Below, piece by piece: positions 484 to 19,384 of a DNA stretch of 64,000 nucleotides. Made by a program: the position numbers and the translations under genes. Position 1 is the stretch's first letter. Each line of letters starts with the position of its first letter. Under the pieces are notes generated by a model. That model was not told the DNA's origin. It made no database searches and saw only the letters and a program-made list of their open reading frames with translations. The stretch lies in the sequence record OR228459.1; one strand, 5' to 3'.

Positions 484-503
484 CCACCAGCTTAAGCTGG
501 TGG
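484..503. other. Perfect palindrome of two inverted Chi sites
   Basis: CCACCAGC-TTAA-GCTGGTGG. Confidence 0.85.
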
Positions 504-686
504 ATGTGGTTAGAATAATAAGAAGGGGAATCCCCAATCATACGATGAACTATATTCAATTCTACCAGTACTGCGAATAGTTACTCCACAAGAATGAGAA
601 GACTGTTGTAGTACTGAACTTTTTATGACGAGAAAATTTGAATAGATTTTGGGTGTACTTATCCTGTACTCTGGACGGATTAAGGG

Positions 687-794
687 CGTGTTTGATTCTC
701 ATTCGCATATAAGAATGATAAACTTTCTCAACATGAGAATGGTTCTCAGTTGCAAATAAGAATAGTTCTCAAATGAGAATAATAATGATTATCG
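687..794. promoter_or_regulatory. Array of about 5 Fur-box-like 7-1-7 inverted repeats, ~23-bp period
   Basis: TGAGAAT-g-GTTCTCA (734-748), TAAGAAT-a-GTTCTCA (757-771), TAATAAT-g-ATTATCG (780-794); partial units at 687 and 710. Confidence 0.7.
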
Positions 795-945
795 TTTTCA
801 GTACTAGACTAATTTTTCCATTGGCTAGCCTACCGCGACGGAATATAATATTCCGGCAGTATCACGAATCAGCTTGTTTTAAATCTGCCGTTATTATCTC
901 AATATCTGGGTAGAATGTCAAGCTAATATTTTAAAAAATAAATGC

Positions 946-974
946 TTGACACGTTGGCAGTACTTTGCTATTAT
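946..974 (+). promoter_or_regulatory. sigma70 promoter of non-coding unit 1, divergent from a minus-strand promoter at about 893-921
   Basis: TTGACA-17-TATTAT; the minus-strand partner reads TTGACA-17-GATAAT. Confidence 0.75.
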
Positions 975-979
975 ATACA

Positions 980-1040
980 CATAGCAAGAACAATGCTCAA
1001 GCCCACAGGGTGCGGAGGTGTATTCGTTAAAAGCTAAATG
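980..1040 (+). ncRNA. Putative small RNA, ACCC-N-GGGTGC family, copy 1
   Basis: Core GCCCACAGGGTGC at 1001-1013; own promoter; no ORF follows; ends approximate. Confidence 0.5.
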
Positions 1041-1056
1041 CGAATGATTATCATTT
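1036..1056. promoter_or_regulatory. Fur box between convergent copies 1 and 2
   Basis: aaaTGCGAAT-g-ATTATCAttt. Confidence 0.65.
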
Positions 1057-1111
1057 CGCTCATATGATACATTTCCGCACCCTCTAGGGTCTCCGCTTTC
1101 TCGCGTCTATA
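1055..1111 (-). ncRNA. Putative small RNA family copy 2
   Basis: Promoter TTGACG(1145-1140)-17-TATAAT(1122-1117); core ACCCTAGAGGGTGC at 1090-1077; ends approximate. Confidence 0.5.
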
Positions 1112-1295
1112 TAGTAATTATACGGTAATGCGGTTTATGCGTCAAGTACTTTTTTAAAGAAAATCGAAAATAATTTAGTACTATATGTATATAAGGAAGG
1201 AAAAAGAATTTTCAAAAAGTACTTGCATTCTAATTTAACCTATTGCATAATAGCTACATCGAAACGAGATACACAAACACATTAAGGAAAACGAT

Positions 1296-1529
1296 ATGAT
1301 TCGCATTGTTCGCATTAATTACTCTACCGGTGAAGCTGATAAAGTAGCGGTTATTGTATCAGAAAAGAATGATGATCATCTACACAATACGCTGATGCGT
1401 TTTGTTAGTGCGGTTGACCGTTGGGCTAGTATTGAGTACTTAGAAACGTTTAAAGTCCCTGCCGTCCAGCTTAACGGGCATGATATTAAAGCAATTTGGA
1501 ATGCTGACGAAATGATCGCGAACATGTAA
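1296..1529 (+). CDS. Hypothetical early protein
   Basis: ORF with TAAGGA RBS and upstream promoter. Confidence 0.8.
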   Translation: MIRIVRINYSTGEADKVAVIVSEKNDDHLHNTLMRFVSAVDRWASIEYLETFKVPAVQLNGHDIKAIWNADEMIANM

Positions 1530-1620
1530 TTATTTCAAGTACTATCAAAATTTACTTGACTTACTTTGATAGTACTTTATAATACTTACATACAAACGAA
1601 GTACTATTAAGGAAAGCATT

Positions 1621-1752
1621 ATGATCACTATCGAGAAAATCCGTTTAGCAGTAGAAGAACTGATCGCGGCTGGCTGGATTGTCGCAGAAAGTGAAGAAGA
1701 AATTAACATTGTAGTAAATGGTATGTATTCAGTTATGACAAACGTGGAGTAA
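1621..1752 (+). CDS. Hypothetical protein (43 aa, MITIEKIRLAVEEL...)
   Basis: Read by hand; TAAGGA RBS and promoter cassette. Confidence 0.75.
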   Translation: MITIEKIRLAVEELIAAGWIVAESEEEINIVVNGMYSVMTNVE

Positions 1753-1834
1753 GTTAGTATTAAAAGTACTTGCATTTACTTAGCGAGTACTTTATAATAC
1801 TTACATACAAACGAAACACTATTAAGGAAATATC

Positions 1835-2452
1835 ATGGAAAACATTATCGACGTTATCAAGTCTGTTTCTTATGCTGATCTGAATGAAGCACAAAAAGAA
1901 AAAGCTATTGAGATCATGCGAGAGTTAGAGAATCAAGAAATGACTCCGTTTTGGTCTGTAGATATTACTGATCAATGGAAAGAAACTTTAGACACTGAAT
2001 ACGGCATTACTGATGCAGTGATTTATTGGTCTGGTTTTTGTTCACAAGGTGACGGTGCATCGATTAGTACTGAATACTATATTGATATTGAGAAGTTTTT
2101 ACGTAAATGTAAAGCGTGGTCAAAATTCCGTGTACTGCACAAAATTATTGACCGTGAAGAAATTCATGCTAAGATTGATCGTAGCTCAAGCCGTTACAAT
2201 CATGAAAACACTGTAAGCGGTAGCGTAGAGCTTGATTATAACATTGATTGGACGGCGAAGCAGGAAAGCGAAGCTGAACGCTTAGAAGAATTTTTGACCG
2301 AAACTATTCGCGAACTTTCTTGTAAGCTGTATAAAGAACTTGATAATGAGAATGATTATCAAAACAGCGATGATGCCCTTTGGTCTACCATTGAAGCAAA
2401 TGAATATGATTTTGCTGTAAACTCAAACGGCGACGTTTTGCGTATCGCCTAA
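1835..2452 (+). CDS. Acidic hypothetical phage protein (YWSGFCSQGDGAS motif)
   Basis: ORF, RBS, promoter; motif recalled from other phage hypothetical proteins. Confidence 0.8.
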   Translation: MENIIDVIKSVSYADLNEAQKEKAIEIMRELENQEMTPFWSVDITDQWKETLDTEYGITDAVIYWSGFCSQGDGASISTEYYIDIEKFLRKCKAWSKFRVLHKIIDREEIHAKIDRSSSRYNHENTVSGSVELDYNIDWTAKQESEAERLEEFLTETIRELSCKLYKELDNENDYQNSDDALWSTIEANEYDFAVNSNGDVLRIA

Positions 2453-2557
2453 AGTACTGACATACTGTAAAACGCTCTATAACGCATTGTAGGGCGTTTT
2501 AAGGAATAGCAGTATCATTTATCATCTTAATTAATTAAACGGCGTAGACGGCGATTT

Positions 2558-2728
2558 ATGAGCAAACAAGATATATTGAAAGGGGATGTTTTATACTGGT
2601 TAGATCCTGATGATGGGATCTGTTCTGGATGGGTAACAGTATTAGACGTTAATACTACAGTACTGGTAAAAGGTGCAACGGCAGAATTTGAAGTGCTACC
2701 CGAAGAACTTTATTCGCATGAAGTTTAA
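2558..2728 (+). CDS. Hypothetical protein (56 aa, MSKQDILKGDVLYWLDPDDG...)
   Basis: Read by hand; fills the gap before the next promoter. Confidence 0.65.
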   Translation: MSKQDILKGDVLYWLDPDDGICSGWVTVLDVNTTVLVKGATAEFEVLPEELYSHEV

Positions 2729-2757
2729 AAAGTACTTGCAAAGTAAATCTAAAAGCG

Positions 2758-2812
2758 TATAATGATTTGCATAGGGGGAAACATCTTCCCCCCACTATTA
2801 AGAGAAACGATT
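2758..2812 (+). repeat. Repeated promoter/5'-stem-loop/RBS cassette (PeSL-like), 10 copies
   Basis: TATAAT-gRtttgc-ata-GGGGGAAacatcTTCCCCC...TAAG(G)A; -10 boxes at 2758, 4715, 5069, 5834, 7903, 9429, 10584, 17305, 18160, 18857. Confidence 0.9.
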
Positions 2813-3253
2813 ATGACTATCTACTATCTGACTTATAAAACCGCCGACAATGTAACTGATGCTAATGTGACCGCAAACACGGTACAGGAAGCAATGGAAG
2901 TACTGAAAGCGGAACTACCTGATATTCAGATCGTTTGTGTAGTTGATACCGAAACGAATCTTAAAACTATTATTGACCACTATGATTATTTCCGTGGGCG
3001 TAAGTTACAGGACTGGTATCATATCGAAATAGAAACACGTGAACTACCAGAAGAACAACAGCACTTTGAGCAGGGTACTAGCATTTGGGTTACTACCGAT
3101 AAACGCATATATTTCTGTTCACGCATACACGTTAACAAGCGTGTTAAAATTGGGGCAGATTCATATAGTGGACTGTTTACAAATAGTAACCTACTAAATG
3201 ACAAGTACATAAAAGTTTATGAGCGTTTTGGAACTGATATTTACGCTTCATAA
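2813..3253 (+). CDS. Hypothetical early protein
   Basis: Start moved to the ATG after the cassette RBS. Confidence 0.8.
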   Translation: MTIYYLTYKTADNVTDANVTANTVQEAMEVLKAELPDIQIVCVVDTETNLKTIIDHYDYFRGRKLQDWYHIEIETRELPEEQQHFEQGTSIWVTTDKRIYFCSRIHVNKRVKIGADSYSGLFTNSNLLNDKYIKVYERFGTDIYAS

Positions 3254-3258
3254 TATCA

Positions 3259-3290
3259 CAAAGGGGAAGCAATTGCTTCCCTGTTTATTT
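3259..3290. terminator. Bidirectional intrinsic terminator
   Basis: GGGAAGC-AATT-GCTTCCC flanked by A and T tracts. Confidence 0.75.
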
Positions 3291-3350
3291 GTACAGTACT
3301 ATAATCTATAGATACAATACCGCACCCCGTGGGCTAATGTGTTTTCATGG
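3259..3350 (-). ncRNA. Putative small RNA family copy 3, about 90 nt
   Basis: TTGACA(3384-3379)-17-CATAAT(3361-3356); core at 3336-3322; ends at bidirectional hairpin 3259-3290; near-duplicate of copy 7. Confidence 0.6.
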
Positions 3351-3782
3351 GTATTATTATGCCAGTACTACAAACATTTGTCAATCATTATTTTCAATTA
3401 ATTTAAACGCACTGTAACACTGTATAAGGCGTTTTGTTATTAAGGTAAGCAAACGTATTGAGTACTATCTAAAAGGCCGTTGTGGGCTTGCTGGTGGCGT
3501 TGTGTTGTAGTATTGAAATATAAGGAAAATATAAAAAAGGCTGTCAATGATTAAAAAAGTACTTGACGGATTGATTTAGTACTGTCATAATGTATCACAT
3601 AGAGCGGCGGGATGGATAAACATTCCTAAGTAGACAGCCAGTAAGTCATACGAAAGACTGGTGCCGAACTGAAAGAAAGATTGAAAAGAGTTTTAAAAAG
3701 TACTTGACAAGCTGGTGGGAAATTGAGATAATGACCCCGTAGACAGCAAACAACCTAATTAAACTTTAAGAGGAAATATACA

Positions 3783-4370
3783 ATGACTACTACTACTGAA
3801 AATGCACGTGTTACCCTGAAATCTGCACTGGAAGCTGGCGACGTTAAAACCCTTGCTGTTATCCTTGCGAAAGTTGGTCATGATAAAGACGGCGTATCTA
3901 AATTGGGCTTGACTTTCTCACTGGCGGTTAAGGAAGCGAAGGAAGTACTTAAAGAGCAAGCCAAAGCAGCAGAAGAAGCTGCACGTCAGGCAGCAGAACG
4001 CCGCGAAGCTAAAAAGGCTGCACGTCAAGCCGAAGAAGAAAAGCGTCAGGCTGAGATCAAGGCAGAAAAAGAAAATATGCTCAAGTTCCTCATGGATACG
4101 GTTAACGGTATGGGCTTAGACCTTGAGGCGGCAGAAGCGGCAGCAGAAGCGGCAATTGTTAAAAAGTACGGCGATGTTAACAAAGTACCTAAGTATACTT
4201 TTAACCGTGTAGCGGTGATTGTAGACGGTAAAGAATACAACATGCCAACTTCTGGGAACATGGTAGAAGTACTTAAAAATGCACTTGAAGCAAGCGGTAA
4301 ATCGCGTAAAGAGTTTATCATCGAACACGCGAAAGACAAGGCAGAAGCGGAAGCGGCATTCGCTGAATAA
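3783..4370 (+). CDS. H-NS/StpA-like protein with altered DNA-binding loop
   Basis: Coiled coil (ERREAKKAA vs H-NS ERREEESAA); C-terminus PKY...G-NMVEVLKNALEASGKSRKEFII vs H-NS AKY...[23 protein letters not shown]; two tandem promoters. Confidence 0.6.
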   Translation: MTTTTENARVTLKSALEAGDVKTLAVILAKVGHDKDGVSKLGLTFSLAVKEAKEVLKEQAKAAEEAARQAAERREAKKAARQAEEEKRQAEIKAEKENMLKFLMDTVNGMGLDLEAAEAAAEAAIVKKYGDVNKVPKYTFNRVAVIVDGKEYNMPTSGNMVEVLKNALEASGKSRKEFIIEHAKDKAEAEAAFAE

Positions 4371-4387
4371 TAACAGTACTAAACTAT

Positions 4388-4414
4388 AGGCGGCCTAAGT
4401 GGTCGCCTTTTTTT
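4388..4414 (+). terminator. Intrinsic terminator
   Basis: AGGCGGCC-taagt-GGTCGCCT plus T tract. Confidence 0.8.
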
Positions 4415-4428
4415 AATTGGGGGATTAT

Positions 4429-4689
4429 ATGGCTGTAGGATTCGCGAAAGACGGGGCAGAACAAGACGAGATTTTAGCGGTCATAAACGCCGCTGTAAGC
4501 CACGCAAGGAATCAGATAGGGGATAGTACTATTACAAGTAGAACGCACTGCCTAGACTGTTCTAGGACTATTCCTGAGCGTAGACGGGAAGTAGTAAAGG
4601 GTGTTAAGTACTGCGTAGAGTGTCAGGCTGATCATGATAGTATATTTAAAAGAGATCCGCGTAATTGTTGGCACAGATCTATGAGATAG
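4429..4689 (+). CDS. TraR/DksA C4-type zinc finger protein (YbiI-like)
   Basis: MAVGFAKDGAEQDEI...CLDC..IPERRREVVKGVKYCVEC. Confidence 0.85.
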   Translation: MAVGFAKDGAEQDEILAVINAAVSHARNQIGDSTITSRTHCLDCSRTIPERRREVVKGVKYCVECQADHDSIFKRDPRNCWHRSMR

Positions 4690-4770
4690 TACTTGACATA
4701 CTTTCTGATTAAAGTATAATGATTTGCATAGAGGGAAACATCTTCCTTCACTAATTAAGGAAATAGAATC

Positions 4771-5043
4771 ATGCGTACACCAATGACCCGCGAAGAAATA
4801 CACACAGTACTGACAACTAACATTCAGGACTGGAAGAAATACGCAGATATTAACGAAGCTCAAGACTTGAACAATGAGCTAGATGGTGAAGATCTGGACG
4901 TAATTTGTTCCCCTGAGTTTTATGATGATATTCATTCCGATGATGATGTTTGGAATGTACTGGAAAAGCATTTCCTCGATACTGATTTAAGTATCTACTC
5001 GCGTGATACTTTTATTTTAATTCACAACATTTATAACAAATAA
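4771..5043 (+). CDS. Acidic hypothetical protein
   Basis: ORF after cassette; D/E-rich. Confidence 0.8.
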   Translation: MRTPMTREEIHTVLTTNIQDWKKYADINEAQDLNNELDGEDLDVICSPEFYDDIHSDDDVWNVLEKHFLDTDLSIYSRDTFILIHNIYNK

Positions 5044-5122
5044 TTGTTGACTTACTTATATAGTACTGTATAATGGTTTGCATAGGGGGAAACATCTTCC
5101 CCCATCAATTAAGGAAAAGAAA

Positions 5123-5332
5123 ATGACTCGATACACTGTAGAAGTACGTACTACTAAAAACATTGCTACTGATGTGATTCGTTATTATAAGATGGTTTGT
5201 GGTGTTGCTCGCCGTATTAGTAAAGCGGATTATGACAAGCTGGATCGCGAAGCTGATGGTATGGATTGTTTTTATACAGTAAACACAAAAACGCATACAA
5301 AGCAATTTAAAACATTGTCTTATTACATGTAA
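5123..5332 (+). CDS. Hypothetical protein
   Basis: Start after cassette RBS. Confidence 0.75.
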   Translation: MTRYTVEVRTTKNIATDVIRYYKMVCGVARRISKADYDKLDREADGMDCFYTVNTKTHTKQFKTLSYYM

Positions 5333-5415
5333 AAAGTTTTACTCCAGTACTTGACAATAGATGCGAGTACTGGCATAATAACTTTATTGAAACGAAATAC
5401 TATTAAGGAAATATC

Positions 5416-5805
5416 ATGGCTAATCTCATTGTTCGATTGTATGAAGATTGTTTCTACTTTTAGTATTGTGGGAAACCTATATCCGTTAAAGAGATGATCG
5501 CATCGGGCTATATGTTATCTAAGCATGATCACACTGGATTCATGGCTGAAATGGTTGCGGCTAGTTATAAGTTTGGTGAAGAATGGGAAGCACAATATTT
5601 TCCGGCTGTCAATGCAATGATTAAGCGGTTGGCAGAACACACTGAGTTTATGGAATTTTGGACTGTTTTAAAAATGGTTGACGTGAATCAGAATGGGGAA
5701 ACGTGTCAGCCATACGCACATTTTGACGCTGGGGAAGATATTAGCACAATTTGGAAATGGTTGGAAGATAAATTTACAACAATTAAAATTGCAGATTACT
5801 TGTAA
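5416..5805 (+). pseudogene. ORF interrupted by in-frame TAG at codon 16 (5461-5463)
   Basis: RBS-backed ATG 5416 is in frame with ORF 5494-5805: MANLIVRLYEDCFYF*YCGKPISVKEM... Confidence 0.65.
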
Positions 5806-5889
5806 AAGTACTTGCATTACTATCTGAAAAGCGTATAATGGTTTGCATAGGGGGAAACATCTTCCCCCACTAACTAAGAGAAGAATATC

Positions 5890-6270
5890 ATGGCTAATCA
5901 AATCACTCCAGCACAGACCTTCAATAAATTCAGTACTGAAATCGTATTGAAAGAGTATGTGCCAGATTATGGTTGGACTGATGCATGTGTATGCACTGAT
6001 GTAGCAGATGCAAAGCAACGCATTAAAGATTATCGTGCGGAGGGTTTACAGGTTAAAACTGCCCGTCGCCGTGTACTTAACAAAGATGCTTTCTTATGTC
6101 AAGCTCTTTTAAACTTCTGCCGTGACTACTATCGCCGTACTGGTGGATTATGGCCTAATGAGGTTGAAGTACTGAAATCTAACGGTAAAGTAAAATTTAC
6201 CTTGACTTTAAAAGAAATTGAGGAAGTACTTGGTGATGATTGTTTTTTAGTAACTTCACAGCCAGCATAA
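5890..6270 (+). CDS. Hypothetical protein
   Basis: ORF after cassette. Confidence 0.8.
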   Translation: MANQITPAQTFNKFSTEIVLKEYVPDYGWTDACVCTDVADAKQRIKDYRAEGLQVKTARRRVLNKDAFLCQALLNFCRDYYRRTGGLWPNEVEVLKSNGKVKFTLTLKEIEEVLGDDCFLVTSQPA

Positions 6271-6339
6271 AAAAGTACTTGACACATAACGGGGATATGA
6301 TACAATATCCCCATATTGAAAAGTAATGGAAGTACTGAA

Positions 6340-6531
6340 ATGAATTATCAAAAGGTTAGCAAGCGAGTAGTTGAACTCTCTAAGAAAGCACGTAAAGAGT
6401 ATACCTTAGAACGTTCAATTAACAACTATCATTTAAAGCAAGGTGATAAGTTTATTGTTATTGACGAACCTTTGGAAATCGTGTATATTGTAGTTAATGC
6501 GATGATTCGTGATAAAACGAGGATTAAGTAA
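6340..6531 (+). CDS. Hypothetical protein
   Basis: ATG after GGAAG; promoter upstream. Confidence 0.7.
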   Translation: MNYQKVSKRVVELSKKARKEYTLERSINNYHLKQGDKFIVIDEPLEIVYIVVNAMIRDKTRIK

Positions 6532-6786
6532 ATGCGTACATTAGACCAACTTATTGACCCTAATACGTCAGCACGTCGATCAATGGTTACTATCGGCGGT
6601 AATGGTAAACAACACTGGAGTGGTTACATTTGCTTTATTGTTGGTGGAAAAATGTATGAGCGGGTAGTATATCACAAAGAGATTAATTATATACTATTCC
6701 GTAAAGAAGTCATAGCAGTCGATCCTACCGCCCTAAAACCGATTGCAGGGGCATGGAACAAAGAATCGCTGTACCTTACAGCTTAA
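6532..6786 (+). CDS. Hypothetical protein
   Basis: Translationally coupled ORF. Confidence 0.75.
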   Translation: MRTLDQLIDPNTSARRSMVTIGGNGKQHWSGYICFIVGGKMYERVVYHKEINYILFRKEVIAVDPTALKPIAGAWNKESLYLTA

Positions 6787-6835
6787 CCAATAAAAGGCCG
6801 CTACGTGCGGCCTATCGCGTTCTAGAGGGTATATT

Positions 6836-7024
6836 ATGAATACTGTACAAGTACTAGATGAGATTGAAAAAATTGTTGACAGTACTAACAAACGTGATAT
6901 ACTGTTATCAAGAAATAAGGCTAACCAGTACGAAAAGAATTGCGTACAATCTGCACTAGGGGGTAACTTTGAATCGCTACACTCAACCATACTTCAAGGG
7001 AATAACAACCGCCCACCAGCGTAA
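6836..7024 (+). CDS. Hypothetical protein
   Basis: GAGGG RBS. Confidence 0.6.
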   Translation: MNTVQVLDEIEKIVDSTNKRDILLSRNKANQYEKNCVQSALGGNFESLHSTILQGNNNRPPA

Positions 7025-7226
7025 AAAGAAACTACACATAGTACAGAAACGAAAGCGTAAAGTACTTAAACTTAAACCAACATATAGTTGGGGATTGTCG
7101 TGGGATGAAATCAATCACGGACTATCATGGAATCAATTATATGTTATTGGCTCAAGTGTTGGACGCTTTCATTTTAGTACTATATCACGACAAGAAACAC
7201 GTGTAAACCCATATAAAAGTACTTGA
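6969..7226 (+). CDS. Basic hypothetical protein
   Basis: TTG start with AGGGGG upstream; overlaps previous ORF. Confidence 0.45.
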   Translation: MNRYTQPYFKGITTAHQRKKKLHIVQKRKRKVLKLKPTYSWGLSWDEINHGLSWNQLYVIGSSVGRFHFSTISRQETRVNPYKST

Positions 7227-7256
7227 CATATATCCGGCTTAGTGAGATAATACTTA

Positions 7257-7310
7257 CAAGCCGGAGAAACGGCGTGACCCATAGGGTGCGAAGAAGTAAT
7301 CAGTACTTGA
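7257..7310 (+). ncRNA. Putative small RNA family copy 4
   Basis: TTGACA(7223)-17-GATAAT(7246); GCCG-gagaaa-CGGC hairpin, then ACCCATAGGGTGC at 7277-7289; ends approximate. Confidence 0.5.
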
Positions 7311-7325
7311 GAATGATAATCATTT
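7306..7325. promoter_or_regulatory. Fur box between convergent copies 4 and 5
   Basis: TGAGAAT-g-ATAATCAttt. Confidence 0.65.
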
Positions 7326-7373
7326 ACAACACTAGACAGATTTATGCACCCGATGGGTTAGATTGTTTTCATG
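7320..7373 (-). ncRNA. Putative small RNA family copy 5
   Basis: TTGACA(7407-7402)-17-TATTAT(7384-7379); core TAACCCATCGGGTGC at 7360-7346; ends approximate. Confidence 0.5.
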
Positions 7374-7500
7374 CATATATAATATCAAAGTACTGTTATA
7401 GTGTCAAGCATTTTTATTTGATAATTATTTTAAAAAAAGTCTTGCATTACTTTCTGAATAACGTATAATACTTACATCAACCACTGAGAGGAAAGAAACA

Positions 7501-7872
7501 ATGTCTATTAAGCGTATTGTATTTGGTCGCGGTGCAAGTGAAGAAGTAGTACCTGTTGAACTGATCGCGATGTTAAATGAAATGATTCGCCGTGGTGATA
7601 TTAATTTTAGTCCTGATGTAATGCCTTATGCGATTTCGTATGAGGTGCGTAAAAGTCCTAAGTACTGGAAGATTGACCGTGTAGAATTGGACAAAGAAAC
7701 CGGAGAGATTCGCGAGTTTGGGCGTAGTTCTGTTGGTGCTGTAGATTTTGAAGGGAACGTGTTTAAATCTGCCAGCTATAAAGCCGTTGCTAAGGGTATC
7801 CGTGGAAACATCTTTGTTAACAATGGTTTTAGTGCAATTACTGGTGACGGATATATTCGTTATTTAAATTAA
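7501..7872 (+). CDS. Conserved phage hypothetical protein (GNVFKSASYKAVAKGIRGNI motif)
   Basis: Resembles a widespread phage family with a GDxYKxASWKAPAK-like motif. Confidence 0.8.
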   Translation: MSIKRIVFGRGASEEVVPVELIAMLNEMIRRGDINFSPDVMPYAISYEVRKSPKYWKIDRVELDKETGEIREFGRSSVGAVDFEGNVFKSASYKAVAKGIRGNIFVNNGFSAITGDGYIRYLN

Positions 7873-7959
7873 AAAGTACTTGCAAAGTAATCTGATTAGC
7901 GTATAATGTTTTACATAGAGAGGGGAAATAGTTTCCCCTCCATATTAAGGAAAAGTATC

Positions 7960-10947: not shown

Positions 10948-10950
10948 TAA

Positions 10951-11984: not shown

Positions 11985-12130
11985 AAAAAGAATTTATCTT
12001 GCGAGTACAAATGAAAGGCGGTGCACAACGTACTTTTCGTGAATGGGGTTGGTCTGCTGGTATGGCCTTTGAACAGCTTAAAAAAGATAATCCCGATGTT
12101 CAATACAAAATAGAATCAAAAGAGGCGTAA
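11981..12130 (+). CDS. Hypothetical protein (49 aa)
   Basis: Read by hand; ATGA overlap; GAGGGG RBS. Confidence 0.7.
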   Translation: MKKEFILRVQMKGGAQRTFREWGWSAGMAFEQLKKDNPDVQYKIESKEA

Positions 12131-12207
12131 TTATTATCAAAAGTACTTTACAAATATAGTAGAGTACTTTATAATACTTACATCAACTAAGCAAAGAGGA
12201 TAGGAAA

Positions 12208-12345
12208 ATGAAAGAATCTCAATACGAAGCAGTACTGGCACAGACTGGTGAAGATCTGACTACTGAGCAGTACGCTAAAATTGAAGAGATGCTTTTAGCT
12301 GGTAAATCTGTTAAAGACACTGTGAAAGCAGTTCGTAAGATGTAA
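12208..12345 (+). CDS. Hypothetical protein (45 aa)
   Basis: Read by hand; follows the promoter module. Confidence 0.75.
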   Translation: MKESQYEAVLAQTGEDLTTEQYAKIEEMLLAGKSVKDTVKAVRKM

Positions 12346-12419
12346 AATAATTAGTCAGTACTCTTGACATTATCATAGAGTACTGCTATAATTACTTTAC
12401 TTAATCAGGAGAACATACG

Positions 12420-12737
12420 ATGGCTTTACATTCAGCAATGCGAAAAACTGTTAATATCTATGCAGATAAAAACATTATGGATTGTACTCTTGGACATACT
12501 GATAATCAATATGCCATTATTGTAAAAAACCCGTTCACTGGTGAAGATTGCATTTACAGTGGACAGTACTTAGAAAGTAATTTATTACCTGCCACAAAAC
12601 GCAGTGAAATGAAAGGGTATATTACCCGGCACAGAGCAGAACGTGACATTGCAACAATCTTTTTACCCGGTCAAAATGCTCGCGTGGTAACGATGGAAGA
12701 AGCAGAGATTTTTCTTGGCAGCCGCTTTAAAGTGTAG
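12420..12737 (+). CDS. Hypothetical protein
   Basis: AGGAG RBS, promoter. Confidence 0.8.
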   Translation: MALHSAMRKTVNIYADKNIMDCTLGHTDNQYAIIVKNPFTGEDCIYSGQYLESNLLPATKRSEMKGYITRHRAERDIATIFLPGQNARVVTMEEAEIFLGSRFKV

Positions 12738-12775
12738 TATAATACTTTTATCAAATCAAGTGGAGTACTAAAAAG

Positions 12776-12916
12776 ATGATTACACCTATTGCACCAATTC
12801 ACAAGACAGTGTATAATACTTATAGTACTCCAAAGCAGCAACATATTATCGAGGAACTGAAAGAACAGAAAAAAGAAGTAAAAAGTACTGGTAACCGAAT
12901 CGATATTAAAGTATAA
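12776..12916 (+). CDS. Hypothetical protein (46 aa)
   Basis: Read by hand; GGAG RBS. Confidence 0.55.
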   Translation: MITPIAPIHKTVYNTYSTPKQQHIIEELKEQKKEVKSTGNRIDIKV

Positions 12917-12948
12917 TACTTACATCAACCACAAAGAGGAATACAAAA

Positions 12949-13287
12949 ATGGCTATTACTTCTATCTTCTGCAACACCCGAAACGAAGCACGTCAGGCTA
13001 AAATCGATTTCAACGGTAAAATTGTTGACAATGGTTCTGATGCACCCAAGGGACAGCGTTGGGAAGTACAATACGAAGTAGCCCCCGTATCTGATGCCAT
13101 CGCGGAACTTGCAGCAATCATGCAAGCGGAAGTACAAGACATGGCACTAGAAGAAGTGTCTCCACGTGAGATTATGGGTCTTCCACGTCCTGTAAGCAAG
13201 AATAAAAAAACCCGTGCTGTGATCATGAAAGATCGCAAAGGTAATTCAGTTACTGTACAGGTTCGTCGTCGCCGCATTACTGCCTAA
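12949..13287 (+). CDS. Hypothetical early protein (KIVDNGSDAPKGQRW motif)
   Basis: ORF, RBS, terminator after. Confidence 0.8.
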   Translation: MAITSIFCNTRNEARQAKIDFNGKIVDNGSDAPKGQRWEVQYEVAPVSDAIAELAAIMQAEVQDMALEEVSPREIMGLPRPVSKNKKTRAVIMKDRKGNSVTVQVRRRRITA

Positions 13288-13327
13288 CCGAAAGGGGGAG
13301 CAATCCCCCAAACTTTTAAGAGGATTT

Positions 13328-13579
13328 ATGAAGAAGCAAGTACAACTAATTAATGGTAATTTCATGCGATTGCATTATAAACCGCAAAAGAAAATCATTG
13401 AGAAAGCTACAAAGGTAGCAAATGATTTTGTTAGTGGGACAGTTCGCCCCCGTAAACTATCTAACGGATTGTTTCAAGTACTGGATATTAGCAGAACAGA
13501 ACGTATCGTAATTGATAAGGAAAAGCAAATACATTTAATGAGTCACGAAAAGTACAATGATTTTGTGAATCAGCGTTGA
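13328..13579 (+). CDS. ParE/RelE-like toxin-fold protein
   Basis: Basic 83 aa ending LMSHEKYN, the C-terminal signature of the ParE-like phage family. Confidence 0.55.
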   Translation: MKKQVQLINGNFMRLHYKPQKKIIEKATKVANDFVSGTVRPRKLSNGLFQVLDISRTERIVIDKEKQIHLMSHEKYNDFVNQR

Positions 13580-13633
13580 CAGACTACCGACAACATAGTA
13601 TAATACTTTCATCAACTAAACGATGGTTCTAAA

Positions 13634-14023
13634 ATGAAAAATATTGTTTCTGCTATCGCTATCGCTGTTATGTTTTCTTCAACTCCAGTTATGGCATACA
13701 CTGTTAATCTGAATGAATTGACAGATTGGGGAAATCAAATGCGTGATCGCTTTGCAGTACCAGACCATATCCAGCCGCAGCAAAAACAAGGTAGTGAAAT
13801 GTTATGCCGTGGGGTAATGACTAACGAGCAAACCGGACAACAAATCCGCGAACAATTCAGTACTAGTGGTGAACGTTCGGTATCGGGTAATGATATCATC
13901 TATCATGATGAAGATGAAACCGGAAGCACTACATTGCAAATTAATGCAAAAACTGGTAAAGGCTTTATTACGATGATGGACACTGAAAAAGTTATCGTAA
14001 CTGGTAATGTAGTTTGCAAATAA
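13634..14023 (+). CDS. Exported hypothetical protein
   Basis: N-terminal signal peptide MKNIVSAIAIAVMFSSTPVMA. Confidence 0.75.
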   Translation: MKNIVSAIAIAVMFSSTPVMAYTVNLNELTDWGNQMRDRFAVPDHIQPQQKQGSEMLCRGVMTNEQTGQQIREQFSTSGERSVSGNDIIYHDEDETGSTTLQINAKTGKGFITMMDTEKVIVTGNVVCK

Positions 14024-14072
14024 AGTACTAAAAAGGGGTTGACTTCGGTCGGCCCTTTTGCTATTATATATC

Positions 14073-14125
14073 CCATAGAAACAAGTTAACCCACAGGGTG
14101 GCGTAGTCCGTCCAAAATTTATTAA
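14073..14125 (+). ncRNA. Putative small RNA/leader, family copy 8
   Basis: TTGACT(14039)-17-TATTAT(14062); core TAACCCACAGGGTG at 14087-14100; the only copy directly followed by an ORF. Confidence 0.45.
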
Positions 14126-14136
14126 AAGTATAATAT

Positions 14137-14391
14137 ATGGAAATATGGAAAACAATCACTGATTCCCCTAATTATGAAGTAAGTAATTTAGGAAATATAC
14201 GAAAAATACGTGATAATAAAGGTATGGCACAAACTAATAGTAAACTTTCAGATGATGATATTAAATTCATCCGAGCTAATTTTAAAAAATGTGATCCTGT
14301 ATATGGTGGAATACCACTAGCAAAGCGATTTGGTGTATATAAAAGTACTATATACAAAATTGTACAAGGACGTGCATGGAAGCATATATAA
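14137..14391 (+). CDS. NUMOD4-HTH mini-protein (HNH homing endonuclease lacking its HNH core)
   Basis: EIWKTI...YEVSNLGNIR joined directly to SKLSDDDIKFIR...LAKRFGVYKSTIYKIVQGRAWKH. Confidence 0.7.
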   Translation: MEIWKTITDSPNYEVSNLGNIRKIRDNKGMAQTNSKLSDDDIKFIRANFKKCDPVYGGIPLAKRFGVYKSTIYKIVQGRAWKHI

Positions 14392-14394
14392 ATA
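14387..14394 (+). promoter_or_regulatory. T4-type late promoter-like TATAAATA
   Basis: Exact octamer 35 bp upstream of ATG 14429. Confidence 0.35.
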
Positions 14395-14428
14395 TATTCA
14401 TAATACCATTTTATATAAGGAGTATATT

Positions 14429-14962
14429 ATGCCGGGTAAATTTCAAGATAAAAATGGTGGGTTAATTGCAGGACATAGTGATCGCTGGTCTGATGAAAAC
14501 CGCCGTAAAAATAGTTTTAATGCTGGTGCTGGAAGTCGAGCTAGTCGAAATCAAGGACTAGGACAAAAAGGACTCGACAATACTAAAACAGATACCATTG
14601 TAGATACTTCTAGGATGAAACCAGAAGAAAAACTAAAGTACTTCCAATCTTTGGGATTACTTGGTCATCAAGAGAAAGGTTCTAAAGAGCCTCCAAAAGC
14701 AGCACCACAAAAACCAATGCCTACCGATAGTAAATCACTTATTAGTACTTTACAAGATCAATGGAAAGATGCGTTTAAAGGCGATGTACGCCATTCTAAG
14801 CGACTTATTGCAGAACTTAAGGACGTTGCCCCAGCTAAGATTAAAAAAGCTCTACAAGCTGCTTACAGGGCCACACAAGAGGTTACCGCACGTGAAGACG
14901 ACCCTCTAACAATCGTTGAATATATCAGTGATGCTATTGTTCCATTTACATATGAAGATTGA
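14429..14962 (+). CDS. Basic, low-complexity hypothetical protein
   Basis: TAAGGAG RBS at the internal ATG (MPGKFQDKNGG). Confidence 0.8.
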   Translation: MPGKFQDKNGGLIAGHSDRWSDENRRKNSFNAGAGSRASRNQGLGQKGLDNTKTDTIVDTSRMKPEEKLKYFQSLGLLGHQEKGSKEPPKAAPQKPMPTDSKSLISTLQDQWKDAFKGDVRHSKRLIAELKDVAPAKIKKALQAAYRATQEVTAREDDPLTIVEYISDAIVPFTYED

Positions 14963-15028
14963 AATAAAAGGTTGACATGAGTCAGCCTTTTTTGCTATCA
15001 TAGTCCTACACCAATAGGAGATAGTAAC

Positions 15029-15292
15029 ATGAAATACTTACTAATCATCGCCGCATTATTCAGTACTCAAGCAATGGCAACAGATATGGTTTGTAGTGCT
15101 GATGGTTTCCAAACTGTATTCAAGGTAGATGGCAACACGCTTATTGACACAAACGAACACGTAGTAGCTGAAGAAATCAGTACTGGTAAGTTTATGGCAC
15201 AAGATCAGTTCGGTGAAGTAGTTTATACTATTCACGGAAATAAGATTGTAATGCAATTCAGTGGCGTTATCAAAGAGTACAATTGCAAATGA
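15029..15292 (+). CDS. Exported hypothetical protein
   Basis: Signal peptide MKYLLIIAALFSTQAMA. Confidence 0.75.
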   Translation: MKYLLIIAALFSTQAMATDMVCSADGFQTVFKVDGNTLIDTNEHVVAEEISTGKFMAQDQFGEVVYTIHGNKIVMQFSGVIKEYNCK

Positions 15293-15483
15293 TTGTACAA
15301 GTAACACTAAAAGGATTGAAGCCCGGAGAAGATGACTACGAAACACATGTAGCCACTATTTCCGGGTTGACAATGGATGAGATTGATGGTAATATACTGT
15401 CATACATCTACGAATGGCGTAATGCAAACGGGTATTACAAAATGAAATATATTCATAAAGAGGTAATCTCATGCGATAACTAA
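15289..15483 (+). CDS. Hypothetical protein
   Basis: Coupled ORF. Confidence 0.65.
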   Translation: MIVQVTLKGLKPGEDDYETHVATISGLTMDEIDGNILSYIYEWRNANGYYKMKYIHKEVISCDN

Positions 15484-15499
15484 CACAGGAGATTACACA

Positions 15500-15715
15500 A
15501 TGCCAACTCATTCACTAGTACTTAATGGGATTCGATTCAAAATGACTGAGGGTGCATTGCAAAGTACTAACACGCAATTAGTACTTGATAAACTCACAAA
15601 AGAACAATGTGATGGTATCCTTCGCGAAGCAAATCGCATTAAGTCAACTGTATCAAATCACCCGGTTAAGCGTCAATTACTTCAGGGGATCATTATGGGA
15701 TGTTTGCGTAAATGA
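15500..15715 (+). CDS. Hypothetical protein
   Basis: AGGAG RBS. Confidence 0.75.
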   Translation: MPTHSLVLNGIRFKMTEGALQSTNTQLVLDKLTKEQCDGILREANRIKSTVSNHPVKRQLLQGIIMGCLRK

Positions 15716-15864
15716 TTTATCAACAAATTATTGCAGTACTGAAAACACTTGACTACGGAAATGCAATCCGTTATGCTAGTGCTAACGCCTTTGAACTCGC
15801 TCAAATGTATGAGCAAGGTAGTACCATTGATGAGCTGGTGGAGGTTTGTCTCAGTCATAAATAA
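15712..15864 (+). CDS. Hypothetical protein (50 aa, MIYQQIIAVLKTLDYG...)
   Basis: Read by hand; ATGA-type coupling. Confidence 0.6.
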   Translation: MIYQQIIAVLKTLDYGNAIRYASANAFELAQMYEQGSTIDELVEVCLSHK

Positions 15865-15890
15865 TCTTGTAATTATTACAGGAGATCATT

Positions 15891-16163
15891 ATGACAGACT
15901 TAAACGCAATCAAGCAATGGAGTACTATCCCATTAAACGAACTACCGCAACTACTAAAGCAACAAGGTTTTCAATTCGTACCACGTTTTAGTACTGAAGA
16001 TCATCGTATCTTCGTATCTCAAGACGGACAATATTTGATTAATATTATCCGTAATACTGGAAAAGTATACAGTACTAAAAATCAGAAATCACCTTTGCAT
16101 ATTTTTGGTATTCGTAATGGTGAGATCCCAAAAGGTGCAGATAAAGCATTCAGAACTGAATAA
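15891..16163 (+). CDS. Hypothetical protein
   Basis: AGGAG RBS. Confidence 0.75.
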   Translation: MTDLNAIKQWSTIPLNELPQLLKQQGFQFVPRFSTEDHRIFVSQDGQYLINIIRNTGKVYSTKNQKSPLHIFGIRNGEIPKGADKAFRTE

Positions 16164-16232
16164 TAAAAAAAGGGTTGACTTAGGTCGGCCCTTTTTGTTA
16201 TTATATACTTATTGAAGCGAAGGAGATAGAAC

Positions 16233-16823
16233 ATGTACGTCACTAAAGCAGCAAAGAAACACTTAAAAGAACTTGACAAGTTACCAACTAATAAACAAAT
16301 GTTAAAGTACTGTCGAGAAAATTTAACACGTTTGGGTAAGGGATCAAGTCGTGAAGTTTTTGCATTATCTGATACATTAGTAATCAAGATCGCTTTAGGT
16401 GGTGTAGGTGTAAAACAGAATGAAAATGAGATTCGTATCTGGAATCTAGTTAGTTATTCATTTACTGGATTTAAGAGATCATTCGCTAAAGTACTGGTAA
16501 ATTCATGCCACTGGAAAGAATTCTATATCGTCATGGAGCGTTTAAATACACAAACCGTGTCGCGGTCAATCTTTAATACAAGTACTGTTAGAGCGTGGCG
16601 TATGGATCGTACCGCAATGCATCCAATTGCTAAACGTATATTCAAAGATGTACAAGCCACTGATGATAATGCTTTTACTAATAACATAGCAGATATAACT
16701 CCACGAAATATGGGAACATCAAAAACAGGTGTTGTCAAGATGTTGGATTATGGTTTTAGTACTCCTATATGGAATGGACTCGCTAACGGTACATTAAAGA
16801 ATAGAGAATTACTTATAAAATAG
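16233..16823 (+). CDS. Ser/Thr protein kinase-like protein
   Basis: LGKGSSREV, VIK, NENE, VMERL, DITPRN, DYG kinase motifs. Confidence 0.8.
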   Translation: MYVTKAAKKHLKELDKLPTNKQMLKYCRENLTRLGKGSSREVFALSDTLVIKIALGGVGVKQNENEIRIWNLVSYSFTGFKRSFAKVLVNSCHWKEFYIVMERLNTQTVSRSIFNTSTVRAWRMDRTAMHPIAKRIFKDVQATDDNAFTNNIADITPRNMGTSKTGVVKMLDYGFSTPIWNGLANGTLKNRELLIK

Positions 16824-16885
16824 TGCTTGACTACTTTATGCTGGTGGGATATACTTATCCCATCAACAACAAAGAGGAATACAAA

Positions 16886-17131
16886 ATGTTTAAAGTACGT
16901 AAATGGTCTGACTCTAACTCCCGCCCATATGATGTTGTTTATGTAGATGATATTCGAAACAATATCCACTATCAACCCGGCGTAGAATTTAGTACGATTG
17001 AAGGTGCTTATAAACATAAAGAAGTACTAATCAAAAGTACTGATGAAGATAGTATAGAATTTATCCGTAATCATTGGCCCACTGATGGTGCCGCTGATGA
17101 GGATAATTCAGAAGAACCAAAAATAGATTAA
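16886..17131 (+). CDS. Hypothetical protein
   Basis: Start after GAGG RBS. Confidence 0.75.
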   Translation: MFKVRKWSDSNSRPYDVVYVDDIRNNIHYQPGVEFSTIEGAYKHKEVLIKSTDEDSIEFIRNHWPTDGAADEDNSEEPKID

Positions 17132-17175
17132 TAAAAAGAGGTTGACTTCGGTCAGCCTTTTTTGTATTATATATA

Positions 17176-17225
17176 TCAAGAAAACAGCTAACCCACAGGG
17201 TGCATAAATCCGTCTTTCAAATGTA
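17176..17225 (+). ncRNA. Putative small RNA family copy 9
   Basis: TTGACT(17142)-17-TATTAT(17165); core TAACCCACAGGGTGC at 17189-17203; ends approximate. Confidence 0.5.
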
Positions 17226-17363
17226 TATTTTTTCATCGAAGTACTAAAACGAATACGAAACAAATAAATTTCAAAAAGTACTTGACCACTATTACCGATT
17301 GTCGTATAATGTTTTACATCGAGAGGGGAAATGGTTCTACTCTCTAACTTAAGGAATTAAATC

Positions 17364-17885
17364 ATGATTACTACTCCAGTACGCGATATGTTTAACGTTA
17401 ACCCCAACACTGGTATTGCTTATGGATACATCAACGCGAACAACGTAAACAGTGAAGTACTGAATGAAATTTTCTGCAATGGTATTGATGTAGCTCGACT
17501 TGAAGCAGATATTGACTTCGCCAAACGTTATGATTTCGTAGTACCTGATCAAAAGGAATCAGAAGATTATACTGCTTATCTTGAGCGTGTACAATCCGAT
17601 ATGCTTGACTTCCTTAACAATCTGGGCGATGATGTGATGGAAGAAGTGGAAGCACATGATCGCGAATATGAAGAGTTTACAGGTCATGTACACGCCGCCA
17701 CAGTAGATAAGACTACAGTACTTTATAACACTGATAACAATACTATCTGTGTTATGGATGGCATCAATGTTGGTTTTTTCTATGCTTGCTCTCCATGCTG
17801 CCCGAATGCTGGTGATCTTGATAGTGCTGGTGGAAGTGTAGAAACTTACGATGTACCTGTAAGCTGGCGTGAACTGGATTACTAA
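17364..17885 (+). CDS. Acidic conserved phage hypothetical protein (NTGIAYGYI; ACSPCCP)
   Basis: ORF after cassette. Confidence 0.8.
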   Translation: MITTPVRDMFNVNPNTGIAYGYINANNVNSEVLNEIFCNGIDVARLEADIDFAKRYDFVVPDQKESEDYTAYLERVQSDMLDFLNNLGDDVMEEVEAHDREYEEFTGHVHAATVDKTTVLYNTDNNTICVMDGINVGFFYACSPCCPNAGDLDSAGGSVETYDVPVSWRELDY

Positions 17886-17944
17886 TTGACAACAACAAAG
17901 GGATAGTATATACTATCCCTAACTTAAGAAAAGAGGAAATCAAA

Positions 17945-18124
17945 ATGGTTCACGTTGATCTTGAAGTACTGAAAAAAGTATGGTACGACATTGGCTATAA
18001 AAATATTAGCTGGACGGATAACCAGTACATCGAGCTTAAGGCACTGGATAACTGGCAGCGTAATGAAGTACTGAAAGCACACAAAAAAGGTGTAGATGAT
18101 CGCTTTAACTTTCCTGTACTTTAA
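17945..18124 (+). CDS. Hypothetical protein (59 aa)
   Basis: Read by hand; GAGG RBS, promoter. Confidence 0.75.
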   Translation: MVHVDLEVLKKVWYDIGYKNISWTDNQYIELKALDNWQRNEVLKAHKKGVDDRFNFPVL

Positions 18125-18216
18125 TAGAAAAAAGTACTTGCATAGTATTCTGATTACTGTATAATGTTTTTCATAGAGAGGGGAATGGTTCTTCTCTCTA
18201 AATTAAGGAAAACATT

Positions 18217-18399
18217 ATGACTAACAAATATCGTACTCAGTTCTTCATGGTTGATGGTGCTCGATTAACTGCTGCTGACGTACACGAGTACTACGGAGTG
18301 AGCATTGATGATCTTCTGGTGATGCATGAAGATGAAACACAATTCTTCCATGCTCATGGGTACGAGGTTAAAGTAACACGCTGCCCAGCATACAATTAA
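18217..18399 (+). CDS. Hypothetical protein
   Basis: ORF after cassette. Confidence 0.75.
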   Translation: MTNKYRTQFFMVDGARLTAADVHEYYGVSIDDLLVMHEDETQFFHAHGYEVKVTRCPAYN

Positions 18400-18444
18400 T
18401 CATTTGGGGAGAGAGGTAATACTCTCCCATATTAAGGAACGTCC

Positions 18445-18711
18445 ATGAAACTGATTAACACACTAACGCGATTGTTTGGCACTGATAATGTTGACGATTG
18501 GAACGATGTTAACGATGAAGATAATGTGATTGATTACATCGTTATCTACCACAACAATGATGGTGATAATGAGTGTGAGCCTGATTACTTCCTACGCCAC
18601 TACGACAACGGATCATACCAGCTTAATGATCTCAGTGGCAACGTAATTCACACTGGTAATGATCTGGCAGTACTAAAGAAAGTACTAAAGAATTTACCAA
18701 AAAGTAATTGA
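18445..18711 (+). CDS. Asp/Asn-rich hypothetical protein
   Basis: TAAGGA RBS. Confidence 0.75.
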   Translation: MKLINTLTRLFGTDNVDDWNDVNDEDNVIDYIVIYHNNDGDNECEPDYFLRHYDNGSYQLNDLSGNVIHTGNDLAVLKKVLKNLPKSN

Positions 18712-18741
18712 CTATAATCTGCTGGTGGAGTATTATATATC

Positions 18742-18800
18742 CATTGGCAGATAAGCCACTAACCCACGGGGTGCATAGATCCATCTATTGGATTTAAGTA
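18742..18800 (+). ncRNA. Putative small RNA family copy 10
   Basis: TTGACT(18708)-17-TATTAT(18731), Chi in spacer; core TAACCCACGGGGTGC at 18760-18774; ends approximate. Confidence 0.5.
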
Positions 18801-18918
18801 CTAAAACCTTTTAAAAAAAGAATAAAGAAAGTACTTGCATTACTATCTCAGTACTGTATAATGTTTTACATCGAGAGGGGGAAATGGTTCTCCCTCCTAA
18901 TCCAAAAGGATACGCACT

Positions 18919-19320
18919 ATGTTCACATTAAACCATTTCTCCGATGTTGTTGCTGTTGCTAAAACCTTCGGCGTTGATGCACTTCGATACGCGATGGATA
19001 ACAGCACCGTATCCGTTGGTGCATGTCACACTATCCGTGACTGCATGAAGTGGGCTGCTAACAAAGTTGTTAGTATTGATAACTTCAACGATGGTAACAA
19101 TGAGTATAGCATTGATGCTGTATTCTCTACCGAGAACGTAGCTGGTCTGTACATCACTGGCCTCGATGATATTCGTATCTCTCGTACTGGTTTCGGTTCC
19201 TTCTACGGCGATGCACGTGAAGCAATGGAGAAGGGTATTATCAATGCCGAGCAGTTAGGCAAAGTACTAAAAGAGATTGCATTACGCAATGAAGCAGCTA
19301 AAGCCTTTGGTTTGCTGTAA
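18919..19320 (+). CDS. Hypothetical protein
   Basis: ORF after cassette. Confidence 0.8.
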   Translation: MFTLNHFSDVVAVAKTFGVDALRYAMDNSTVSVGACHTIRDCMKWAANKVVSIDNFNDGNNEYSIDAVFSTENVAGLYITGLDDIRISRTGFGSFYGDAREAMEKGIINAEQLGKVLKEIALRNEAAKAFGLL

Positions 19321-19384
19321 TACATAACACACTATACAAGGCCACTGGTTAACGCTGGTGGCCTTTTACTATGGAGGTAATATC

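Follow-up and report, generated by a model that had tools for sequence, protein, structure and literature searches.

Why does one end of a large phage genome carry a dense array of the octamer Chi, almost all of it on one strand, and what might such an array do there? The question is raised by the Klebsiella phage fENko-Kae01 (OR228459.1), which has a linear genome of 360,105 bp and whose left end, a stretch of 64,000 nucleotides designated the window in the following, was analysed here. The window matches bases 1-64000 of this record at 100% identity. Chi is taken as the exact octamer 5'-GCTGGTGG-3' and was located by exact search of both strands; all enteric bacteria tested use this Chi, and it is on this literature that the link to the host, K. 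aerogenes, rests. The octamer is active in one orientation only: the host enzyme RecBCD must approach it 3' side first, and it must be on the strand whose 3' terminus is at the end of entry (PMC12315714). As argued below, the terminal repeat in which the array lies is, on balance, probably a Chi-armoured, recombinogenic end, a reading drawn from the comparison of sequences. The paper describing fENko-Kae01 (PMC11218385) makes no mention of Chi or RecBCD, and a literature search for Chi in jumbo phages or in direct terminal repeats found nothing relevant.

Chi sites in the direct terminal repeat

The + strand of the window carries Chi at positions 496, 3490, 3711, 8065, 9192, 11205, 11952, 15834, 16840, 17826, 18721, and 19354 (12 sites), and the - strand of the same block only at 484 and 7013; in the remaining ~44 kb, Chi occurs only at 43247 (+) and 42526 (-). 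An initial annotation of the window had listed 12 + and 2 - sites in 484-19361, and exact search bore out every coordinate. It had left conditional that the block is a direct terminal repeat (DTR). This premise is true, as positions 1-19736 are the DTR of 19,736 bp and 50 genes that was published on the basis of PhageTerm (record annotation; PMC11218385), and all 14 clustered sites lie within it, the last one ending 375 bp before its right boundary. The 50 genes of this left copy are small, are all encoded on the + strand, and nearly all have a sigma-70-type promoter of their own. The right copy (genome positions 340370-360105) is outside the window. In OR228459.1 the two copies are identical, perhaps by construction, since the second copy is usually added by the depositors; the published PhageTerm result is therefore the actual evidence for the repeat.

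Over both strands of the 64-kb window, 16 Chi sites stand against 0.54 expected, and none of 100 dinucleotide shuffles reached 16. For the + strand of the DTR, where 12 sites are observed, Markov models of orders 0, 1, 2, and 3 predict 0.10, 0.16, 0.22, and 0.59 sites, respectively; the order-0 value agrees with the random expectation of below 0.1 that had been estimated initially. Models of orders 5-6 (3.8-9.1 expected) were discarded as nulls: their sub-words come from the very 12 sites under test, which makes them uninformative. The unique region of 320.6 kb, for which the rest of the record was counted, holds 12 + and 6 - sites, and the density of + strand Chi is 0.61/kb in the DTR versus 0.037/kb in the unique region, a 16-fold difference (P = 2e-9). 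With both strands counted, Chi occurs every 1.4 kb in the DTR; the spacing is one per 4.6 kb in E. coli, one per 1.90 kb in phage P1, and one per 1.86 kb in phage LLS (PMC12315714).

An excess of this kind need not reflect a RecBCD signal and could instead stem from a regulatory or packaging motif, from codon or G-skew bias, or from the spread of an intergenic cassette. Such an origin would fit the repeated promoter and ribosome-binding site (RBS) cassettes and the other strongly over-represented words of the DTR, and also the location of all its genes on the G-rich + strand (the G+C content of the DTR is 37%). Chi is not the most frequent octamer outright, the commonest being AAAGTACT with 35 copies, and it ranks third among the over-represented octamers of the DTR (order-3 Markov z = 14.9), the top-ranked octamers around it being pieces of a repeated promoter/-10/leader/RBS cassette. 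Composition-matched and codon-aware nulls, however, fail to explain the count. Chi with 12 copies ranks first among the 168 octamers of the same composition, which average 0.2 copies and of which the second most frequent has 2. A codon-aware null had been asked for by the initial annotation and leaves the excess standing: the five coding + sites compare with a mean of 0.74 under synonymous-codon shuffling of the 50 DTR genes, and five were reached in none of 5000 shuffles. All four Ala-Gly-Gly tripeptides in the DTR proteins are spelled GCTGGTGG. The non-coding + sites (7 of the 12) fall in intergenic DNA, which makes up 5.2 kb (26%) of the DTR and in which the density of Chi at least equals that in coding DNA, and the strand split of the intergenic sites is 7 + versus 1 -. 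One-mismatch variants of Chi are not enriched, with 6 on the + strand of the DTR (0.30/kb) versus 0.41/kb in the unique region, which argues that selection acts on the exact octamer. Taken with the sequences flanking the sites and with the related phages, both described below, these results make an origin unrelated to RecBCD highly improbable.

Orientation of the sites towards the genome ends

The 3' end of the + strand is the right terminus, and the 12 + sites are active for RecBCD entering from the right end; for entry from the left end, only 484 and 7013 are active. The orientation assigned initially, with the + sites facing right-end entry and the site at 484 facing left-end entry, agrees with the rule cited above. 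In the right-end copy, the Chi at 19354 is the first that RecBCD would meet, 375 bp from the terminus, and the first active Chi for the opposite direction lies 484 bp from the left end. The + sites become denser towards the right end of the repeat. If a recognition of 20-40% per Chi is assumed, the calculated switching of RecBCD within the repeat amounts to 93-99.8% for 12 sites and 36-64% for 2 sites.

The short distances between the ends and the first active sites would also suit a role in limiting adaptation by clustered regularly interspaced short palindromic repeats (CRISPR), in which Chi near the ends would chiefly shorten the stretch of DNA that feeds spacer uptake by Cas1-Cas2 from RecBCD products. 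Chi reportedly bounds spacer acquisition. For this purpose one or two sites close to the end should suffice, yet the 12 sites extend over 19 kb, and the related phages Muenster and BF have no end-proximal site at the left. Moreover, many hosts of these phages are without active adaptation, and the effect would add to a protection of the ends, not replace it. We therefore consider CRISPR limitation improbable as the chief function of the array.

Sequence context of the individual sites

At the left, the - site (484-491) and the + site (496-503) form the inverted pair CCACCAGC-TTAA-GCTGGTGG (484-503), with a hairpin of -16.2 kcal/mol (z = -3.6) that is also scored as a - strand terminator-like site. 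The inverted pair, described as a palindrome by the initial annotation, is indeed perfect, and its - site faces left-end entry as had been proposed, being the first site active in that direction; the + site is the innermost one of the right-end copy. Copies of AACAGTACT beside the Chi palindrome are kept in the related genus Asteriusvirus. At the other end of the array, the Chi at 19354-19361 is the 3' arm of a + strand terminator-like hairpin that is followed by TTTT (19338-19368; -18.3 kcal/mol, z = -4.35). This hairpin is 93% identical in the Asteriusvirus phage fEgEco12 (about 10853-10880), at a different place in the repeat, and it appears to behave like a small shuffled intergenic module. 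One Chi-bearing hairpin at different places in two lineages would also fit the spread of a cassette.

Four + sites lie in promoter spacers, as had been stated initially. Three of the promoters are of the strong TTGAC-N17-TATAAT type, namely TTGACA-N17-GATAAT (3704-3732, Chi at 3711-3718), TTGACT-N17-TATACT (16827-16855, Chi at 16840-16847), and TTGACT-N17-TATTAT (18708-18736, Chi at 18721-18728), all on the + strand. The fourth site (9192-9199, +) is in the spacer of a promoter-like sequence with a weaker -35 region, TTGCTT-N16-TATAAT (9180-9207), upstream of ENKO_022. Chi as an element of the promoter consensus was ruled out, since the spacers of the 34 strong sigma-70-type promoters of the DTR are otherwise unrelated; it follows that Chi is not a promoter element. 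Most of the sites occupy DNA with little constraint on its sequence, namely promoter spacers and hairpin stems. The remaining intergenic + site (3490-3497) shows no evident structure. Within genes, Chi is read in the Ala-Gly-Gly frame (GCT GGT GG) in ENKO_019 (8065-8072), ENKO_027 (11205-11212), ENKO_028 (11952-11959), and ENKO_045 (17826-17833), and in the Leu-Val frame (CTG GTG) in ENKO_041 (15834-15841), all on the + strand. The second - strand Chi (7013-7020) lies within the overlapping + strand genes ENKO_015 and ENKO_016. The sequences flanking the 12 + sites are unrelated to each other, which, like the differing promoter spacers, speaks against a cassette or a longer motif as the source of the array.

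Chi arrays in related phages

Comparisons were made with the close relatives Munch and 7t3, which are 97-99% identical to fENko-Kae01 in parts, and with four other genus-level lineages, Asteriusvirus, Alcyoneusvirus, Eneladusvirus, and Mimasvirus. In Munch, the first 21 kb hold 11 + and 2 - Chi and the 20 kb that follow hold none; 7t3 has 14 + and 1 -. Most sites are common to these phages and fENko-Kae01, with some turnover: the Munch equivalents of the sites at 3490 and 9192 are GCTAGTGG and ACTGGTGG, the - site at 7013 is present in Munch and absent from 7t3, a new Chi in 7t3 is derived from TCGGGTGA, and one site lies in a gene that fENko-Kae01 is without. Conservation in Munch and 7t3 was rejected as a stand-alone test, being too weak at a local identity of 90-100%, and it is the distant lineages that carry the argument.

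The DTR of fEgEco12, 20,993 bp as determined by PhageTerm and restriction digests (fEgEco12 paper), contains 10 + and 2 - Chi, and the next 29 kb contain none. In the whole genome of the E. coli phage EC22.5-2, the 20 kb equivalent to the DTR hold 9 + and 2 - sites, and the remaining 331 kb hold 7 + and 10 -. The Klebsiella phage Muenster has 7 + and 1 - within its DTR of 20,030 bp. For the Serratia phage BF, the counts over the first 20 kb are 6 + and 0 -, and for the Mimasvirus phage XbC2 they are 7 + and 2 - over the first 17.5 kb. The terminal concentration of Chi thus also holds in three relatives for which mapped DTRs or a whole genome are available. When the five lineages are pooled, the terminal blocks (98 kb) contain 42 + and 7 - sites and the control DNA (414 kb) contains 13 + and 9 -; the polarity of 42 + versus 7 - has P = 2e-7, and the right half of the block holds 29 of the 42 + sites (P = 0.01).

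Only the left-terminal inverted pair, the terminator hairpin, and one site common to BF and XbC2 can be aligned between lineages with Chi kept. In the Asteriusvirus relatives, both arms of the inverted pair are invariant, and the loop (TTGT) and the flanks differ. The other ~40 sites are located in DNA that does not align or at homologous positions without Chi, which suggests that they were gained or maintained independently. Polar arrays that are confined to the repeat and mostly non-homologous in position are not predicted by shared descent and point to continuing selection for the octamer. They also weigh against a signal unrelated to RecBCD, as the motif is exactly the Chi of the host and recurs at non-homologous positions in five lineages on Enterobacterales (XbC2 being related to such phages).

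Some further observations concern the relatives. Asteriusvirus has a second, looser inverted Chi pair, an intergenic - and + site 54 bp apart at ~6.6 kb into the repeat (fEgEco12 6619-6688; 37309-37378 in the numbering of one segment of the EC22.5-2 genome); in fENko-Kae01 there is just a lone - site, at 7013. XbC2 (OP292654.1, 38% G+C) was deposited as a phage of Xanthomonas vesicatoria, yet it carries an enterobacterial Chi array; the phage may normally grow on an enterobacterium, or a host other than Xanthomonas may have shaped it. Another relative, Sharanji, is recorded on the E. coli K-12 strain MG1655. Viral metagenome contigs were also scanned for the 20-nt Chi palindrome; a single contig of 1.9 kb was returned, which was of no use for comparison.

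Proposed role of the array

Behind the sites, whose statistics, confinement to the repeat, polarity, and conservation are established, we infer RecBCD as the selective agent, and the same applies to which end or ends are exposed. The relevant ends may be those of the injected DNA or those made during concatemer processing or packaging, as in lambda and LLS, where terminase covers the left end and the right end stays open (PMC12315714). Host RecBCD would load on such a free duplex end and degrade the DNA until it encounters GCTGGTGG on the active strand, and from the right end it would meet up to 12 active Chi within the 19.7-kb repeat. Once Chi is recognised, the 3' strand would no longer be degraded and RecA would be loaded on the 3' tail of the + strand. 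This RecA-coated tail, being homologous to the other copy of the repeat, could invade it or anneal with it, and the genome would be circularised or concatemerised, or recombination-dependent replication would be primed. Sequence lost before the recognition of Chi would still be held by the other repeat copy, so that no information would be lost. The site at 484, with 7013 behind it, would do the same for the left end, more weakly, and if the left end were also processed from 484, two tails complementary over ~18.9 kb would result. That the phage uses RecBCD to protect and recombine its ends appears to be the reading best supported by the statistics, the conservation in five lineages, and the precedents of P1 and LLS.

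In favour of this reading, the DNA of fEgEco12 was cut as predicted by all restriction enzymes tried (fEgEco12 paper), and the DNA is therefore probably not heavily modified. A tblastn search for an end protector like gp2 of T4 gave no match (best E = 1.7), a weak negative from a search aimed at gp2 and not, genome-wide, at other inhibitors; the gene beside the gp4-like head-closure gene belongs to a family of unknown function. A PHROG scan of the 20 largest DTR proteins found no family annotated as RecBCD inhibitor among them, likewise a weak negative; most are without annotated function, and the scan returned a DksA-like zinc finger, a virion structural protein, an annotated kinase of an unnamed family, and otherwise unknowns.

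Several points weigh against the proposed use of RecBCD. The record annotates a UvsX-like RecA (ENKO_307) and UvsY (ENKO_308), both detected by mass spectrometry, together with several exonucleases, and lambdoid phages with a Rec module of their own are mostly without Chi (PMC12315714). With phage-encoded recombinases at hand, Chi may matter only until the phage proteins are made, or for protection alone, and the phage may need RecBCD more to protect its ends than to recombine them. The left end has just two active sites, and Muenster and BF have none near theirs; the array would leave that end unprotected if it entered first. Wherever genome ends are mapped, the block of early genes and the DTR coincide, so that 'repeat' and 'early region' are inseparable as the feature that the array tracks. 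Since all DTR genes are on the + strand, some of the polarity of the coding sites could reflect a transcription-strand or G-skew bias, although the intergenic sites still show the bias described above. Virion proteins could cap the ends, and DTR genes of no annotated function could inhibit RecBCD.

Would the array, then, serve protection only? It might act as a RecBCD sink that switches off or disassembles the few RecBCD molecules at the first exposed end and lets the unique DNA survive, the joining of the repeats and replication being left to the UvsX, UvsY, and nucleases of the phage and not to host RecA loaded by RecBCD. The presence of these phage proteins agrees with such a division of labour, as does the rarity of Chi in the unique 320 kb, from which the phage does not seem to rely on Chi genome-wide. 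Chi is also said to protect linear DNA in vivo. On the other hand, the loading of RecA is mechanistically coupled to the recognition of Chi, and a recombinogenic tail would form anyway; the sites are located inside the repeat, where such a tail has a homologous partner, as a role in recombination predicts; and P1 and LLS use Chi for recombination-dependent growth. Protection without recombination is in our view unlikely, if worth keeping in mind.

An extension of the proposal that repeat ends are both protected and recombined takes the polarity further. As a tentative possibility, the array might be a directional start signal, with RecBCD launching recombination-dependent replication rightwards from the left repeat copy before any phage recombinase is present. 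The right end, and hardly the left, would then yield a RecA-coated 3' tail of the + strand, and replication would proceed in the direction in which most of the genome is transcribed. The polarity would reveal the first-exposed end, and lytic phages with their own recombinases would still depend on Chi and RecBCD of the host. Protection of rolling-circle tails as the reason for the polarity was weighed by reasoning only; it would need leftward forks.

Comparison with known systems

Phage P1 has 50 Chi sites that are concentrated in terminal-redundancy DNA and for which direct selection was argued (Subramaniam and Smith, bioRxiv 10.1101/2021.07.08.451572), and it needs RecA and RecBCD. P1, P7, D6, and NGUA22 resemble fENko-Kae01 in that the density of Chi greatly exceeds that of the host chromosome and that Chi is concentrated in terminal-repeat DNA. 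Further points of likeness in this group are that coding and non-coding DNA carry Chi at similar frequencies and that recombination between the repeats by RecBCD and RecA was proposed (bioRxiv 10.1101/2021.07.08.451572). P1 differs in being temperate, in its headful packaging and variable terminal redundancy, and in having Chi on both strands (31 of 50 on the top strand), whereas fENko-Kae01 is a 360-kb myovirus with fixed ends, exact 19.7-kb repeats, a polarity of 12:2, and its own UvsX and UvsY; no integrase is annotated in the regions listed.

The second precedent is LLS, which grows best with RecBCD and which, like 62 other Rec-less lambdoid phages, has many Chi sites oriented towards the right end (Genome Res 2025, PMC12315714). 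Its Chi sites are strongly polar (20 of 23), clustered towards the right end, and oriented for RecBCD entry there; Chi density runs against the local G+C content, selection on Chi was inferred, and TGCTGGTG is also frequent. LLS has cos ends, no terminal repeat, and no recombination genes, and its Chi sites are graded along the genome. In fENko-Kae01, on the contrary, Chi is confined to the repeat and recombination genes are present, so that this phage does not belong to the 'no Rec module' class of LLS and breaks the dichotomy of 'Rec module or Chi'.

The E. coli chromosome uses the same octamer, and there too a strand bias makes the sites face incoming RecBCD. Its Chi sites are more widely spaced than those of the DTR, as given above, and are mostly located in open reading frames with the CTG-GTG frame predominant, whereas half of the DTR sites are non-coding and four of the five coding ones are in the GCT-GGT-GG frame. 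The DTR of T5, at 10.2 kb, is likewise long and exact; pre-early genes with host-type promoters are located in it, and the main ones point to the first-entering terminus, an arrangement which, by analogy, the right copy of fENko-Kae01 would fit. The T5 DTR has 2 + and 0 - Chi and no comparable array, and T5 handles host nucleases by other means; an array is thus not a general property of coliphages with long DTRs, and with these two sites T5 was dropped as a general test of long DTRs. The end cap gp2 of T4, Gam of lambda, gp5.9 of T7, and Abc2 of P22 address the same problem, a linear genome exposed to RecBCD. These protein strategies block or modify the enzyme, whereas a Chi array would act in cis, through the signal by which the enzyme itself is regulated. 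For fEgEco12, circularisation through the repeats was proposed, with Chi unnoticed (fEgEco12 paper).

Other repeated elements of the terminal repeat

Apart from Chi, the DTR contains five compact terminator-promoter units (9064-9101, 14032-14067, 14963-15001, 16167-16204, and 17134-17170). Each has the form of a G+C-rich hairpin, AAAAGGGG-TTGACT-TCGGTC-(G)CCCCTTTT, which holds the -35 region of the next promoter and whose T-run leads into TATTAT. The palindromic hexamer AGTACT is very strongly over-represented: the DTR has 122 copies, or 6.2/kb, where a dinucleotide model expects 6.3 copies, and the unique 320 kb have 697 where 89 are expected. Sixteen copies are found in 28-1218, and half of the DTR copies are inside genes. 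In many early promoters, AGTACT is placed just upstream of the -35 region (AAAAGTACTTGACA) and just before the -10 region. Outside the repeat, the - strand gene ENKO_525c, which lies in a series of - strand genes, each of ~1.1 kb, immediately to the left of the right repeat, contains three - strand Chi (genome positions 335913, 335973, and 336150) that are kept in 7t3.

Implications

The logic of the array is that of P1 and LLS; what is new is the setting, namely virulent jumbo myoviruses that have fixed, exact repeats and encode a recombinase, together with the strictness of the confinement, the strength of the polarity, and the conserved inverted Chi pair close to the left terminus. If the proposed role is true, phage-selected Chi would extend from P1 and the Rec-less lambdoid phages to large virulent phages whose long repeats are fixed and which encode recombinases themselves. 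This bears on the long debate on whether Chi is a mark of 'self' or a recombination and repair signal that is open to anyone. The array would also give a sequence-only clue to the exposed genome end in this group of phages, and if the directional start should hold, the polarity would reveal the first-exposed end across the RaK2-like jumbo phages (Asteriusvirus, Alcyoneusvirus, Eneladusvirus, Mimasvirus, and the Munch group). Finally, a dependency on the host would be predicted, namely on recA, recBCD, and the recognition of Chi by RecC, which would be relevant to host range and therapy and which relatives infecting E. coli K-12 make directly testable.

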